Source: Octopus bimaculoides (Eukaryota). Taken from it: a stretch of 64,000 bases of DNA. This document shows, piece after piece, positions 305-59,962 of the stretch. The notes beneath the pieces are model-generated. The model was given only the letters and a program-made list of their open reading frames with translations, had not been told where the DNA came from and did no database searches. Numbering within the stretch: position 1 is the first letter of the stretch; every line of letters begins with the position of its first letter. The stretch covers positions 49,857,753-49,921,752 of the forward strand of contig NC_068998.1 in NCBI RefSeq assembly GCF_001194135.2, in the 5' to 3' direction. A program made the translations under genes and the position numbers.

Positions 305-2008
305 ATGCTGCGATATCAGAGTTTTGCGAAGATACAGCCAAGGAATTTTGTGACGATGTTATGAAAAGATATCCTATACAAAAAAAGGACAAATACTATT
401 GCAAGTAACTTCGCTTTCATTATTATCATTATTTTTATTAATATTTTGTAATAATAGAATTTATAAACGTATATCTTCATCATAAATGAGAAATACATGC
501 TAAATAACCAACAGTGGATAAAGAACGTATGTGTATACTGTGTGTAAAACCGAACGGGAGACATACAAACATGCTTGCTAATTCTTCAAAAGGTAACACA
601 TCCCCATATGTTCTATTTATCAACCACAACTCAGGGAAGTACTTATTCTTATCACTAATGGTGCGAAACTGAGTATTAAAACATTCGTTGATAACTGATG
701 AAGAATTAGGGACACTCTCTGTGTGTTTTCCGTCCCGCTGTACACTCAGTACAACAATATGTATTTTATACGTCGTTGTTTATTTTAAATGCATCTTTTC
801 CTTTATTATGTAATAGGATGCAAGACACTCTATATTCTTATTAGATGTTTATATACATGCATAATACATGTATATATATATATATATATATATATNNNNN
901 NNNNNNNNNNNNNNNNNNNNNNNNNNNNNNNNNNNNNNNNNNNNNNNNNNNNNNNNNNNNNNNNNNNNNNNNNNNNNNNNNNNNNNNNGAAAGAAACAGT
1001 TTACCATTGTGGAATTTCAACACAGGACATAAAATGACGAAAATTCTGCTAGGCATTTTGTCCAGTGTGCAAACCATAGGAGAAATAAGACGAGTTATTT
1101 TTAATTCGAAGTTGTTGAATCCACACCATGAGAATGAATAAATAATCCGAAAGCAAACCATGCACAACGTTACAAACCATGTTAAAATGTACCGTATAAA
1201 AAGTATGATTTCGAAATTGTATTATTAAAAGTAAATAAATGCGATTTTATATTAGATTAGCTAAATAAATGTATCGAATAATATTTCTTGACATATATTA
1301 TATTTTTGCTCTTAGTCGCATAAAATTGTTCAAGGACTGTTTTAAAGGAACGTTCAAGGAATGTGCAGATTTCTTCGCGAGCACATTTAAGAATAAAAAA
1401 TGTGGTATGATATTTTCATTAAATATTTTAGTTTTGTGAGAAATAACGTTTCAACAGTTTGAATCTTATACAATAATTGTTTTGAACTGAAATTTCTGAA
1501 CATATATTCCAATGAACTTCTATCTTCATTGAATGAAATTATTATCTTCGATGAAATAGATTTTACTAATATTATTCTTATCATTTAATAATTCTCATTC
1601 CGTTAAGCATAACAATAATCATTGTCTATCTTGCGAGTGCGCTAATATATGAATTGAATGTAATTGTAAGTATTTATAATGGTATTAATTATAAAGTTAA
1701 ACTTGTTAAGTCGAATTAATTGTTAAAGTTGAATCTGTTGTTAATTTGCAAATCCATATAAGTTGATGACAGTGAAATTAAAATAATAAATAATCACATT
1801 ATGTGTTTTTTTTTTCTTACATGAGAGTTTTATTAACAGTTGTTTGTAAGCCAATAAATGTAAATGGTAAAATTCAAAAGGTAAGAGGTACGGATATTTT
1901 CTATTTACTCTAGCTCAAACAATTGCTAAACAAAATGCTCCCTCTTCGACCCGCCTTGAGTCATTACGGATCCTATTATTGCTTCTAATAATATCGGTAT
2001 TGTTATGA
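305..2008 (+). CDS. Six-Cys GPI-type surface protein, copy A1 (5'-partial). Exons 305-404, 1316-1404, 1914-2008. Protein xAAISEFCEDTAKEFCDDVMKRYPIQKKDKYYCNRIKLFKDCFKGTFKECADFFASTFKNKKCAQTIAKQNAPSSTRLESLRILLLLLIISVLL*
   Basis: AG/GT boundaries (atag|ATGCTG...TGCAA|gtaact; cttag|TCGC...TGTG|gtatga; tctag|CTCAA...TGA) join in frame, with exon sizes 100/89/95 as in paralogs A2 and A3. AATAAA at 2060-2065. Exon 1 probably lies just upstream of the window, since the (TA)n(TG)n at 1-40 resembles the intron-1 microsatellite of A3. Confidence 0.88.
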
Positions 2009-5000
2009 TGGAATGCCGTCTCAGCTGCTACTTATGTATTTCACGTAAGAATATTCATGAATAAAAGTTGATTTCAAATTCTGTATAGTTTCTTGCTTGC
2101 ACAACGTGCCAAATATTTAAATTTCAGTTGAAAAATGGAGTAATCTGAGACACATTACTTGCACTAAATTATCCTTCCAATAACTGTTAACTAAAATTAC
2201 AATTGCAGTGTAATGTGGCTGTAACGTCTTTGAGTATTAATTTTATATCACTGACACGAATTTTTAGTCCGACACGAAAGGCTACTATATAACAGTAAAA
2301 TCCTATTGTGGCGTATGTCTCAGAATTGACAATTTATATTTTAGGATATGTCTAAAATGTTGCTTCTATGTAGCTACATTGGCCCACAAAAGTGTCTATG
2401 ATATGTTATATCTTATATTTTGTAGGTTTTTTGTATATAATTATATATATGTATGTATGTATGTATATATATATACATATGTATATTTTGTATNNNNNNN
2501 NNNNNNNNNNNNNNNNNNNNNNNNNNNNNNNNNNNNNNNNNNNNNNNNNNNNNNNNNNNNNNNNNNNNNNNNNNNNNNNNNNNNNNNNNNNNNNNNNNNN
2601 NNNNNNNNNNNNNNNNNNNNNNNNNNNNNNNNNNNNNNNNNNNNNNNNNNNNNNNNNNNNNNNNNNNNNNNNNNNNNNNNNNNNNNNNNNNNNNNNNNNN
2701 NNNNNNNNNNNNNNNNNNNNNNNNNNNNNNNNNNNNNNNNNNNNNNNNNNNNNNNNNNNNNNNNNNNNNNNNNNNNNNNNNNNNNNNNNNNNNNNNNNNN
2801 NNNTATATATATATATATATATATATATATACATGTACGAATGTATGTATGTATTTATATACATATATGTTTATACTGAGTTTAAAAAATCCTGTACCTG
2901 TTGAGTTCAGGCTGATCGCTGTGTACGTTCATTTGAGAGATCCCTAAGTAAAAGCTTTTCGTATCTCAGAAAATTTAGTAAAGACACTAAGAATAGCCAA
3001 GTCAGTTGGCAATCAATAGACAATAAACGAATACTCGAACACAGGATAGCTGCGGAAAGAGCTTAGAAATCGAGTAAATACACTTAGAAGACGGAAAAAA
3101 GTGACCACTAAGCCTCTTGAGTGAATCGATGCCAACACTTCTCAAATACCGGCTGAGTAGTAAAAACACTGAAGGAGAATGATACAGAAGTTTAAAATTT
3201 GAGATGGAAAATATGCCAAAGGTAAGGATATAAATATTACCATGAGAAAAGTTAACCGTGCTTATAAATTCTTCAATTTACAAACTGGTGATATTCAGAA
3301 ATTCTGGTTTTAAATCTCACAACGATTTCTGGAAGGGCTTTGCAATATAGGAATCTTACATAAGTATCAAGACAAAGGATACACTCAATAATGCAGAAAG
3401 TACAATACGGGTAGAAGTCAGCACGTATAAACTCATTGCAAGCTTACAGTCGCTATGGAAATTACTGATCTTATTCGCTATGTGTACTTAAATACACATG
3501 CCACTAACATTCCAGTGCGAATGGCAGTTAAAGTTGTGGTTTTGTGACCGATTATACAAAGCTGTTTGAAATGAATTCTCTTTCAGTCAGAATGTATAGG
3601 TTAAAGTAGGAAAGAAGAGGTAAACAATTTGGCAAAGCTCTTAATTTGACTTAGCCATATTAGGAATGGTAGGCAAGTTTATTGGATATCCCAGCAATTG
3701 GAACATCGTGCCGAGCGAATTTTCCATAAGCCGAGTATCCCATCATTAGACAAAGAGTTATAAACAGAAATAGGTTAAACTAACATTGGAATAAAAGTTC
3801 CTCATCAATGATGACTGATGCGGTTCCTTCTATATGTAAAAAAAAAAAAAATAACACTTCGGGTAATCACAAACATTTGGCTAAGGCCCATTACATATAT
3901 GGTGCCGCCACACACATAACCCTTCGCTCTAACTAAATTAATATACACCTTGAAGCTTTTTTTCACAGGTATACACAGACTCTGTAGGACATTCTTGTCC
4001 TCCTACAGGTCTTTGAGAATATATTTTCATTAACTACGGATGCTCAGTTTTAACTCTTAATTTATTTAATTTTACTTTTATTTGTTAAGCTTACACTTCA
4101 TCACGTTTATAATATTGAATGTTAACTTTAGTTTTAAACCCTAAATCTAATCTTTTGTTTACTAAAGCGGCATTTATTTCTAGCATTAACGCAACTAAGA
4201 TTTCCCCAAGTAACCCATCACATCTAATAAAATTGACCACATACACTATGTGACGTATATGAACCTTTTTATGACTGGTTTATTATCTCCACGCACACCC
4301 TGTCCATTCTGTAGGTCTCATGTCTGCCATATTTATCCCTTATCTCTCTGTCTTCACACTTGCGCTACCTTTAACCTTCTGGACAGTAGTAGTCCTCGCC
4401 ATAGTGATAAGGATATAACTAGTCCAAAACTACTATCTACCTATGTTTCTCCTACCACAGTGTACTCCATTCCTGCTCTCATCATTTGTCCACATTTGGA
4501 AATGCTAGCATCCGTTCTCCCTTACTATGGATTACTATGTAACCATTCCCTTCAATCATGCATTTACCTAAGAAATACCAGATCTCATTGGAATTTAATG
4601 GATTTATTTAGATCTCTCTTGCCTCTCTGAATATAAGGAAAGACAAAAGCTATCATTGTTCAGGAATTTTCATTGCACTGCGATATATGTTGAAAATATT
4701 TCAATTTATCACTCTCTCACCGATGATGGAATACGCAGCATATGGAGAATTCGTTCGGCACGACATTCTAATGGCTGAGATATCCCAGAAGCAGCTGTCA
4801 GAGATTATCTCTACCATTCATTATATGACTAAATTAATTTAAATGACCTTGTAAAGTCTTGTCAAATTATTTGCTTCTCCTAAATACTTTAACACGTGCA
4901 TATACACTCTCTCTCTCACACACACACAAGCACATGCACATATGCATACTCATACAGAGATACACTCAAACACACACATAAACGCACATATATACATGCT

Positions 5001-5044
5001 CACGCACACAAAACACACACGTTTATCTGCATGTGCATGGGAGA

Positions 5045-58899: not shown

Positions 58900-59215
58900 T
58901 TATTATTATTATTATTATTATTATTATTGTTAGTAGTAGTAGTAGTAGTGGTAGTAGTAGTAGTAGTAGTAGTAGTAGTAGTAGTAGTAGTAGTGCCTTC
59001 GCATAGTTTCTAACGCTGGAGATGTACTACAGTGTCAGCTGTTCACTACCAGTGCACTATAATAACACATCCTACTTAACGAGCACCTTCCGGAGTATTC
59101 GAGCGGTTCCAAGCAGTGCTGTTTTCTACAAGTGCTCAACCCTTGTTGCAGCCCCTATTTGTTCCACGTAAATCTCGAGATTTTGGCCCACCATTCCCAG
59201 GGCTCCGGCAATTTA
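58900..59215 (-). mobile_element. 3' end of an R4/Dong-like LINE with (TAC)n(TAA)n tail
   Basis: Minus strand ALGMV...L*KTALLGTARILRKVL followed by a simple-repeat tail. Confidence 0.65.
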
Positions 59216-59876
59216 TTATTATTATTATTATTATTATTATTATTATTATTATTATCATTATTATTATTATTATTATGATTATTTAATCTATTTTAATTCA
59301 GCGAACTGGTAAACTTGTTAGGACACCGTACGAAATGCTTAGCAGATTTTAGTCCTTTACCTTCTGAATGGAAATTCCGACCAGGTCCACTTTGCCGTTC
59401 AGCCTGTCAGGTCGATAAAATAAGTAGGAGCTGAAGCGAAGAAGAAGAAGAAGAAGAAGAAGAAGAAGAAGAAGGAGGAGGNNNNNNNNNNTAAGTAGGA
59501 GCTGAAGCGAAGAAGAAGAAGAAGAAGAAAAACTACAACAACATTAATTATAATAAAGATACACTGGAAATTTATTTACCAGCTTATTATAATTACTGTT
59601 TAATTTCCACATCTATTTTTATCTTTTTCTGCCAAAATTATTTCCAATGGTTTACAGCTGCTTAGTCTACGTATTGCTCTCGTTTGTAAGTTGTGTATTT
59701 CACCTGATTACACGCAGAGCTCTTATGAATGGAGACTGTTTGCGTTATTGGTCGAGAACAATCCTCACACTTCATGTAATTCTCGAGAAAATGTCAACGA
59801 TATTGACGAAATAAATCCATCAATTCTAAATGACATGACTAATTCATTAACATATTTTTTGTTTCAATTTATTTAG

Positions 59877-59962
59877 GTGACGTTCCCAAATCTAGGTTAG
59901 CGCCCTGCGTTGTTACATTAAACAATATATTATTGGCCGTTCCTGAATCTACCATATTTTAG
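59877..59962 (+). pseudogene. Orphan intact B-type last exon (xDVPKSRLAPCVVTLNNILLAVPESTIF*), with intron-3 end and 3'UTR homology over about 59690-60200
   Basis: tttag|GTGAC acceptor; 86 nt like B7 exon 4 with the same ATA TTT TAG ending. The AATAAA seen at this position in B5/B7 reads AACATA. No exon 2/3 match upstream. Confidence 0.7.

Follow-up and report, generated by a model that had tools for sequence, protein, structure and literature searches.

The stretch of DNA analysed here, a window of 64,000 nucleotides (nt), lies on the Octopus bimaculoides chromosome CM046618.1 at about 49.858-49.922 Mb and carries a tandem cluster of small four-exon genes. The products are read as secretory six-cysteine helical mini-proteins that resemble the head, or N-terminal domain, of the RGM proteins and probably carry a lipid anchor, and this reading as a whole is given a probability of about 60%. 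The gene family is real and is partly present in public databases already, where it is nameless. An earlier annotation of the window, made from its letters alone and referred to below as the original prediction, had described the cluster as a tandem array of an unrecognised family of small, probably membrane-anchored proteins.

The cysteine motif C-x7-C-x6-[YF]P-x4-D-x3-C has seven matches in the six-frame translation of the window, all on the + strand, and the same search returned no match in 100 shuffles of the window. Self-comparison of the DNA resolves the tandem units into two subfamilies, A at 0.2-20 kb and B at 25.5-50.6 kb. Each motif match falls inside a single copy of exon 2, which measures 100 nt in 7/7 copies (starts at 305, 11115, 18490, 27070, 35051, 38944 and 48106) and is bordered in every copy by an AG acceptor and a GT donor. 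Exon 3 is found in six copies, 89 nt long in A1-A3 and B4 and 92 nt long in B2 and B3, and encodes R-x6-C-x7-C-x11/12-C. Upstream, six copies of a 37-nt exon 1 (starts at 10352, 18061, 25719, 33961, 37643 and 47000) encode MK followed by ten mostly hydrophobic residues, and downstream there are seven open last exons (ends at 2008, 13866, 19813, 37029, 41180, 50405 and 59962) that specify a short linker and a hydrophobic end. The intron phases are 1, 2, 1 throughout and the in-frame products are 98-107 amino acids (aa) long. The exon counts and lengths, the strand, the splice sites, the phases and the product sizes given in the original prediction could all be rebuilt exactly. Its statement that seven last exons are intact holds to the extent that all seven are open; the B3 exon has lost its stop, and the exon at 59877-59962 is an orphan.

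Six spliced proteins follow from this plan, from A1, A2, A3, B2, B3 and B4. Gene A2 (NCBI LOC128249853; 10352-13866, +; exons 10352-10388, 11115-11214, 13009-13097 and 13772-13866) encodes 106 aa, and its spliced product equals three NCBI RefSeq transcript isoforms (XP_052830353/4/5) residue for residue. Gene A1 (NCBI LOC128249852; 305-2008, +; exon 2 at 305-404, exon 3 at 1316-1404 and last exon at 1914-2008) has its exon 1 upstream of the window and is identical over exons 2-4 to isoform X2 of the NCBI model (P0003). These two matches bear out the proposal that the genes are real, spliced and tandemly duplicated. Gene A3 (NCBI LOC128249851; 18061-19813, +; exons 18061-18097, 18490-18589, 19189-19277 and 19719-19813) also encodes 106 aa and is free of assembly gaps. 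Its exons 1-3 are identical to the NCBI model (P0001), and its last exon is conserved, paralogous to the last exons of A1 and A2, and encodes the hydrophobic tail. The subfamily B genes with the full four-exon plan are B2 (98 aa; 33961-37029, +; exons 33961-33997, 35051-35150, 36119-36210 and 36962-37029), the gap-free B3 (107 aa; 37643-41180, +; exons 37643-37679, 38944-39043, 39981-40072 and 41086-41180) and B4 (103 aa; 47000-50405, +; exons 47000-47036, 48106-48205, 49307-49395 and 50320-50405). Three window genes (LOC128249851-853) are already modelled singly by NCBI, each as "uncharacterized protein". A collection of 15 billion proteins contains neither the single-domain products of B2, B3 and B4 nor an A3 protein bearing the conserved tail, and a word-indexed homology search with B2 gave no result.

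A search of 1.84 billion representative proteins with a family profile, made from sequences of the window and of databases, returned 30 proteins at E<1e-3. One of these, P0010 (1503 aa, 12 matching stretches), was judged to be a low-complexity false positive. The source was looked up for 24 relatives and is Octopus in 24/24 cases (O. bimaculoides, O. sinensis and O. vulgaris); five further relatives lie outside these 24. The same chromosome carries most of the O. bimaculoides members, and three mapped relatives are located at 49.42-49.65 Mb on the opposite strand. The window is therefore one end of a super-cluster of about 0.5 Mb. NCBI models of distant paralogues, 230-300 kb away, have exons of 37/100/89/104 and 40/100/89/95 nt. 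The window provides a checkable gene plan, in which the 37/100/89-nt exons include a phase 1-1 cassette and are followed by a tail exon, for a super-cluster that is listed publicly as uncharacterised only. The family can no longer be called unrecognised, as the original prediction had it: NCBI and UniProt hold >20 members as uncharacterised entries (e.g., LOC128249785-789 and CAI9735827-841), one of them is named after GDNF/GAS1, and a remote link leads to the RGM N-terminal domain. Apart from that one automatic UniProt name, on A0A0L8GPX5, the entries name neither a family nor a domain and assign no function, and nothing specific to this family in Octopus was found in the literature. Cephalopod genomes contain large lineage-specific expansions, for example of protocadherins and zinc fingers. 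The small secreted and surface proteins of cephalopods are poorly described because short exons escape views based on open reading frames (ORFs).

The exons of the cluster are under constraint. Between B2 and B3, exon identity is 84.5% and no column is gapped, whereas intron identity is 75.9% and 22% of the columns are gapped; the numbers of a global A2-versus-A3 alignment, which misplaced exons, are left out. The ratio of nonsynonymous to synonymous substitution rates (dN/dS) among paralogues is 0.5-0.8 and all cysteines are invariant, which together indicate a constrained scaffold with fast-changing surfaces. The invariant six-cysteine scaffold and variable surfaces of the original prediction are in agreement with these values and with the indel-free exons of B2 and B3.

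Exons 2 and 3 are predicted to encode one all-helical domain of about 62 residues with six invariant cysteines, which presumably form three disulfides. With the 42-domain family alignment, AlphaFold produced a confident all-helical model (predicted local distance difference test score, pLDDT, 94.3; predicted template modelling score, pTM, 0.81) with helices at residues 2-13, 15-20, 30-41, 46-58 and 61-68. It supersedes an earlier model from a seven-row alignment, which had a pLDDT of 66.8 and an uninformative Foldseek search. An internal duplication, with exon 2 homologous to exon 3, was suggested by MAFFT, which aligned the B exon-3 peptides with exon 2; it was rejected, with a probability of 4% from hhalign for the two halves and differing exon phases.

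Proposed relationship to the RGM N-terminal domain

From profile comparisons, the most likely identity of the octopus domain is that of a free-standing and highly divergent relative of the RGM N-terminal domain. A Pfam search with the window proteins gave nothing significant, and RGM_N (PF06535) recurred just below threshold. RGM_N was matched by 22/42 single domains of the family at E<1, and the next family by 2/42. In two multi-domain relatives, P0005 (37.9 bits) and P0013 (29.1 bits), the RGM_N score exceeds the gathering score of 24.2 bits, and that of a further relative, P0020 (22.2 bits), comes near to it. A sequence search of the PDB with the family profile returned the RGMB N-terminal domain as its top four hits (E 0.06-0.19), with the octopus pattern PDxxYCxRLxxYxxCxxxxxxxC aligned to FDSEFCKALRAYAGCTQRTSKACRG of RGMB. 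Comparison with the RGMB domain by hhalign, using a sequence verified against the PDB, gave a probability of 50% and an E-value of 1.6e-4 over 29 columns; this score was reached by 0/200 shuffled RGMB sequences, and by 0/200 shuffles in which the cysteines were kept fixed.

The RGM N-terminal domain is a three-helix, three-disulfide bundle that binds BMP/GDF ligands, and RGMs are attached by a glycosylphosphatidylinositol (GPI) anchor (PMC7354924). Like this domain in RGMA, RGMB/DRAGON, RGMC/hemojuvelin and C. elegans DRAG-1, the octopus domain is predicted to be an extracellular helical bundle that follows a signal peptide and contains six cysteines. Both contain the core [FY]C-x8-C-x7-C, located on the middle helix, and the octopus family appears to end in a GPI-type tail where the RGM carriers are GPI-anchored. 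In RGM proteins the N-terminal domain is always followed by a large autocleaved C-terminal domain, whereas the octopus domain stands alone or in tandem, and Pfam found no RGM_C match in the window proteins or their relatives. In the products of about 100 aa the domain leads straight into the tail and RGM_C is lacking; they are therefore not RGM orthologues. The C1-C2 spacing is x7 in the octopus domain and x4 in RGM, the last helix of the octopus domain is about 10 residues shorter than that of RGM, and the RGD/RGN loop of RGM is absent from it.

Several results weigh against a relationship with RGM. RGM_N is matched by 3/6 window proteins, only at E 0.15-0.56, and the other 3/6 have no match. 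The above-threshold RGM_N scores of the relatives are sums over repeated weak stretches. The profile similarity is limited to about 30 residues in the central third of the domain at 14-16% identity, a global alignment with RGM fails, and the outer cysteine spacings differ. Foldseek analysis of the confident model found no significant neighbour in the PDB, where RGM is not listed at E<=10, and no match among the viral models of BFVD. An Octopus-specific orphan fold, with its likeness to RGM_N due to convergence on one amphipathic helix bracketed by cysteines, is a serious contender on such grounds, yet the less probable origin. The missing structural neighbours and the short, weakly identical segment would suit it, as would the distribution of the family, since no relatives outside Octopus occur among the looked-up sources after a search of 1.84 billion representatives. 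Convergence would have to account for four independent profile tests that all lead to RGM_N and to nothing else, for an hhalign score above all cysteine-fixed shuffles, and for a context of signal peptide, six cysteines, helical bundle and GPI-type tail that fits RGM too (PMC7354924).

The view in the original prediction that the proteins belong to no assignable family is retained in part: the window proteins have no significant Pfam or Foldseek match, but the remote profile link to RGM_N is reproducible. If the RGM link holds, the view of this domain as confined to RGM proteins would be overturned, and the family would amount to a naturally occurring set of small helical binders locked by disulfides. 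If it fails, the window would contain an Octopus-restricted orphan fold under constraint.

Other known families were compared with the octopus domain. The GDNF/GAS1 domain of GFRalpha and GAS1 (PF02351/SMART GDNF) is likewise all-helical and cysteine-rich, and GFRalpha and GAS1 are GPI-anchored co-receptors for cystine-knot ligands. The name assigned automatically to A0A0L8GPX5 by UniProt is 'GDNF/GAS1 domain-containing protein', a label that was not reproduced. Pfam GDNF was matched at E<=1 neither by A0A0L8GPX5 nor by the 42 domains, the PDB search with the family profile listed no GFRalpha at E<=10, and hhalign against the PDB-verified GFRalpha3 D2-D3 gave a probability of 0.1%. Membership of the GFRalpha/GAS1 family is rejected at the search sensitivity used. 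GFRalpha domains have about ten cysteines, compared with six in the octopus domain. Ly6/uPAR proteins provide a functional analogy only, as tandemly expanded, rapidly evolving small proteins that are secreted or sit on the surface, are rich in disulfides and often carry a GPI anchor. They adopt a beta-rich three-finger fold and contain 8-10 cysteines, in contrast to the all-helical octopus model with its six; the octopus domains have no Pfam UPAR_LY6 match, and membership was rejected. Matches to DUF1397, NPR2, BPP1_LPA, Thioredoxin_9 and similar families, by one or two of the 42 domains each, were treated as chance.

Separate or chained genes in subfamily B

The cassette formed by exons 2 and 3 (100 + 89/92 nt) is phase 1-1 symmetric, which permits in-frame splicing between cassettes of adjacent genes. 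The symmetry would allow concatenation and may have contributed to the growth of the family, which has multi-domain members elsewhere in the genome. LOC128248155 (546 aa) is a nine-domain paralogue on another chromosome (CM046606.1:89238283-89285765, locus L005) and spans 43 kb. Its one 37-nt signal exon is followed by exons that alternate between about 100 and about 90 nt, with no internal signal exons, and multi-cassette genes are on this evidence a genuine state of the family. A chained model also exists within the window: the three-domain NCBI protein P0006 (233 aa) joins B2 exons 1-3, B3 exons 2-3 and B4 exons 2-4. Its donor after B2 lies 6 nt further downstream than the donor in the single-gene B2 model. 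The NCBI gene range of P0006 begins at B1 exon 1, and no B1 coding exon is used in the protein.

Separate genes B2, B3 and B4 are more likely than one chained gene. It is doubtful that the B part forms one multi-domain gene with one signal exon, chained cassettes of exons 2 and 3 and one tail exon, in which the internal copies of exon 1 and the last exon would be relics of duplication. Such a gene would correspond to P0006 and to an independent O. vulgaris annotation, in which a four-domain orthologue (P0005) has a single B-type tail. The in-frame splicing of chained cassettes, the damaged tail of B3, the truncation of B1 and the lone signal exon of the nine-domain paralogue are also consistent with it. 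Against it, the 37-nt signal exons of B2 and B3 are identical and open, have GT donors and share identical immediate flanks, and the tail exons of B2 and B4 are still open behind good acceptors. The subfamily A genes, built on the same plan, are annotated singly, and the chaining of tandem paralogues is common among gene predictors.

Signal peptide, hydrophobic tail and proposed role

Exon 1 and the start of exon 2 would encode a cleavable signal peptide. The (-3,-1) signal-peptidase pattern noted in the original prediction is present in every copy, and cleavage is predicted after A/V-x-S. The last exon would add a short linker and an uncharged hydrophobic C-terminus of 11-14 residues, and from its composition it most likely directs GPI anchoring. 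An uncharged C-terminal 12-mer with a mean hydropathy >=1.5 is found in 14 family members (A1-A3, B2, B4 and nine relatives), and a GPI anchor is plausible family-wide. At 11-14 uncharged residues, the tail is too short for a membrane span. The hydrophobic, uncharged C-terminus of these 14 members is consistent with the GPI signal that had been proposed; the agreement does not extend to good omega sites in A1 and A2, nor to the tail of B3.

Points that weigh against the anchor are the Pro at omega+2 in both A1 and A2, the stop loss that breaks the B3 tail, and the lack of a hydrophobic tail in several relatives (P0011, P0012, P0013, P0028 and P0030). To these is added the NCBI model of A3, which ends in a different, tail-less exon at 21604-21749 (+; 100% identity by tblastn; good acceptor, tcttcttgcag). 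With this exon, A3 is a protein of 123 aa that ends in ...HPNICW and has two extra cysteines. No paralogue of the exon was found elsewhere in the window, and its product may be either a second, secreted isoform of A3 or an artefact of gene prediction.

It is rather improbable that the mature proteins are soluble secreted factors of a pheromone-like, chemosensory or antimicrobial kind, with a hydrophobic end that is removed, absent from the main isoforms or no more than a short membrane tail. The tail-less A3 isoform and relatives and the weak omega sites of A1 and A2 would agree with soluble products, as would retention of intron 3, by which the B proteins would end directly after the domain (...CLRK, then a stop). 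The tail exon is nevertheless conserved and open in A1-A3, B2, B4 and distant paralogues. Its extreme C-terminus, in which the uncharged residues follow small residues, has the classic GPI pattern and falls short of the length of a transmembrane helix.

Intron 3 begins with the same ~18 nt in A1, A2 and A3 (gtatgatattttcattac/a; window 1405-1440, 13098-13160 and 19278-19316). If intron 3 is retained in the A genes, the frame continues as C-GMIFSL(L/N)I(L/I)V... to a short hydrophobic end, and the O. vulgaris model P0007 has exactly this read-through ending (...CGMIFSLLIIIFA). The conserved start of the intron may represent an alternative C-terminus or a splicing element. In the nine-domain LOC128248155, a hydrophobic end likewise results when the frame is read on past one cassette (around L005 37814).

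With GPI anchoring as the preferred reading of the tail, the proteins would be tethered to the outer leaflet of the plasma membrane, or shed from it, and serve as small modules that bind ligands of the secreted or surface type. The scaffold would be fixed and the exposed faces would diverge quickly. By analogy with RGM, a tethered ligand-binding module is the likeliest role. A further, improbable reading is a true radiation of the BMP-binding RGM N-terminal domain, freed from RGM and carried by dozens of GPI-anchored single- or multi-domain proteins. This lineage-specific repertoire would supply membrane-tethered co-receptors, or decoys, that engage TGF-beta/BMP-type ligands or others of the cystine-knot class, and the domain would then occur for the first time outside RGM proteins.

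Defective copies, assembly gaps and neighbouring elements

Three copies in the cluster are defective, namely the truncated B1, B3 without its ancestral stop, and a fragment at 59.9 kb. B1 (25719-27169, +) consists of exon 1 (25719-25755) and exon 2 (27070-27169); its exon 3 and last exon were lost to a deletion of about 1.64 kb with a junction at 27632/27633, away from any gap. The reading frame of B3 runs 10 codons beyond the ancestral stop, so that the hydrophobic stretch is followed by ERNPKICSV. The fragment (59375-59962, +), identified by blastn against the B copies, is a partial duplication that covers only a B-type intron 3 and the open last exon at 59877-59962. Sensitive tblastn, a scan for exon-shaped ORFs and low-stringency blastn found none of the missing exons of B1 and of the 59.9 kb copy. 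A degenerate copy of a B-type intron 3 and last exon, with a decayed tail ORF, is located at 55020-55572 (+) by blastn against B2, B3 and B4.

Further signal exons are present towards the right end of the window. An exon-1-like exon of 37 nt at 56903-56939 (+) encodes MKATISMCLLIL, which is the N-terminus of the two-domain UniProt protein A0A0L8GPX5, and the other exons of this gene lie outside the window. A second exon-1-like start, MKTTICMCL..., at 63974-64000 (+) is clipped by the window end. Given these two starts, the array probably continues past the right end.

The window has a base composition of 33.8% G+C, many microsatellites and 17 runs of N. The part at 8061-31749 (23.7 kb) is byte-identical to CM046618.1 of GCA_001194135.2, gaps included. 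None of the 17 gaps touches an exon, and the reading frames are therefore independent of the gap lengths. Five gaps are intronic: intron 2 contains 896-988 in A1 and 11266-11424 in A2, and intron 1 contains 25975-26439 in B1, 34544-34598 in B2 and 47291-47300 in B4. The A2 gap comes nearest of all to an exon, 52 nt past a donor. The remaining gaps are all intergenic, including one at 59482-59491 in the intron-like part of the orphan copy at 59375-59962. Single extra exons could still sit inside gaps. A microsatellite of (AT)n, (AC)n, (TC)n or similar type directly adjoins 11/17 gaps in the Tandem Repeats Finder table, for example at 871-895|896, 6126-6168, 8367-8405, 22065-22090 and 26440-26490. 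The assembly apparently breaks in simple repeats and not at the duplicated genes.

Three coding fragments of other kinds are found between or beside the genes. A C2H2 zinc-finger coding fragment at 50691-50963 (-; zf-C2H2, E 1e-10) runs into the gap at 50966-51822. Between A2 and A3, an ORF of 124 aa at 15405-15779 (-) has a weak match to a Tc1/mariner transposase helix-turn-helix domain (HTH_Tnp_Tc3_2, E 0.0064) and looks like a transposon relic. A short ORF at 24383-24568 (+) shows a weak GIY-YIG nuclease-like match (E 0.001) and may be the relic of a Penelope-like element.

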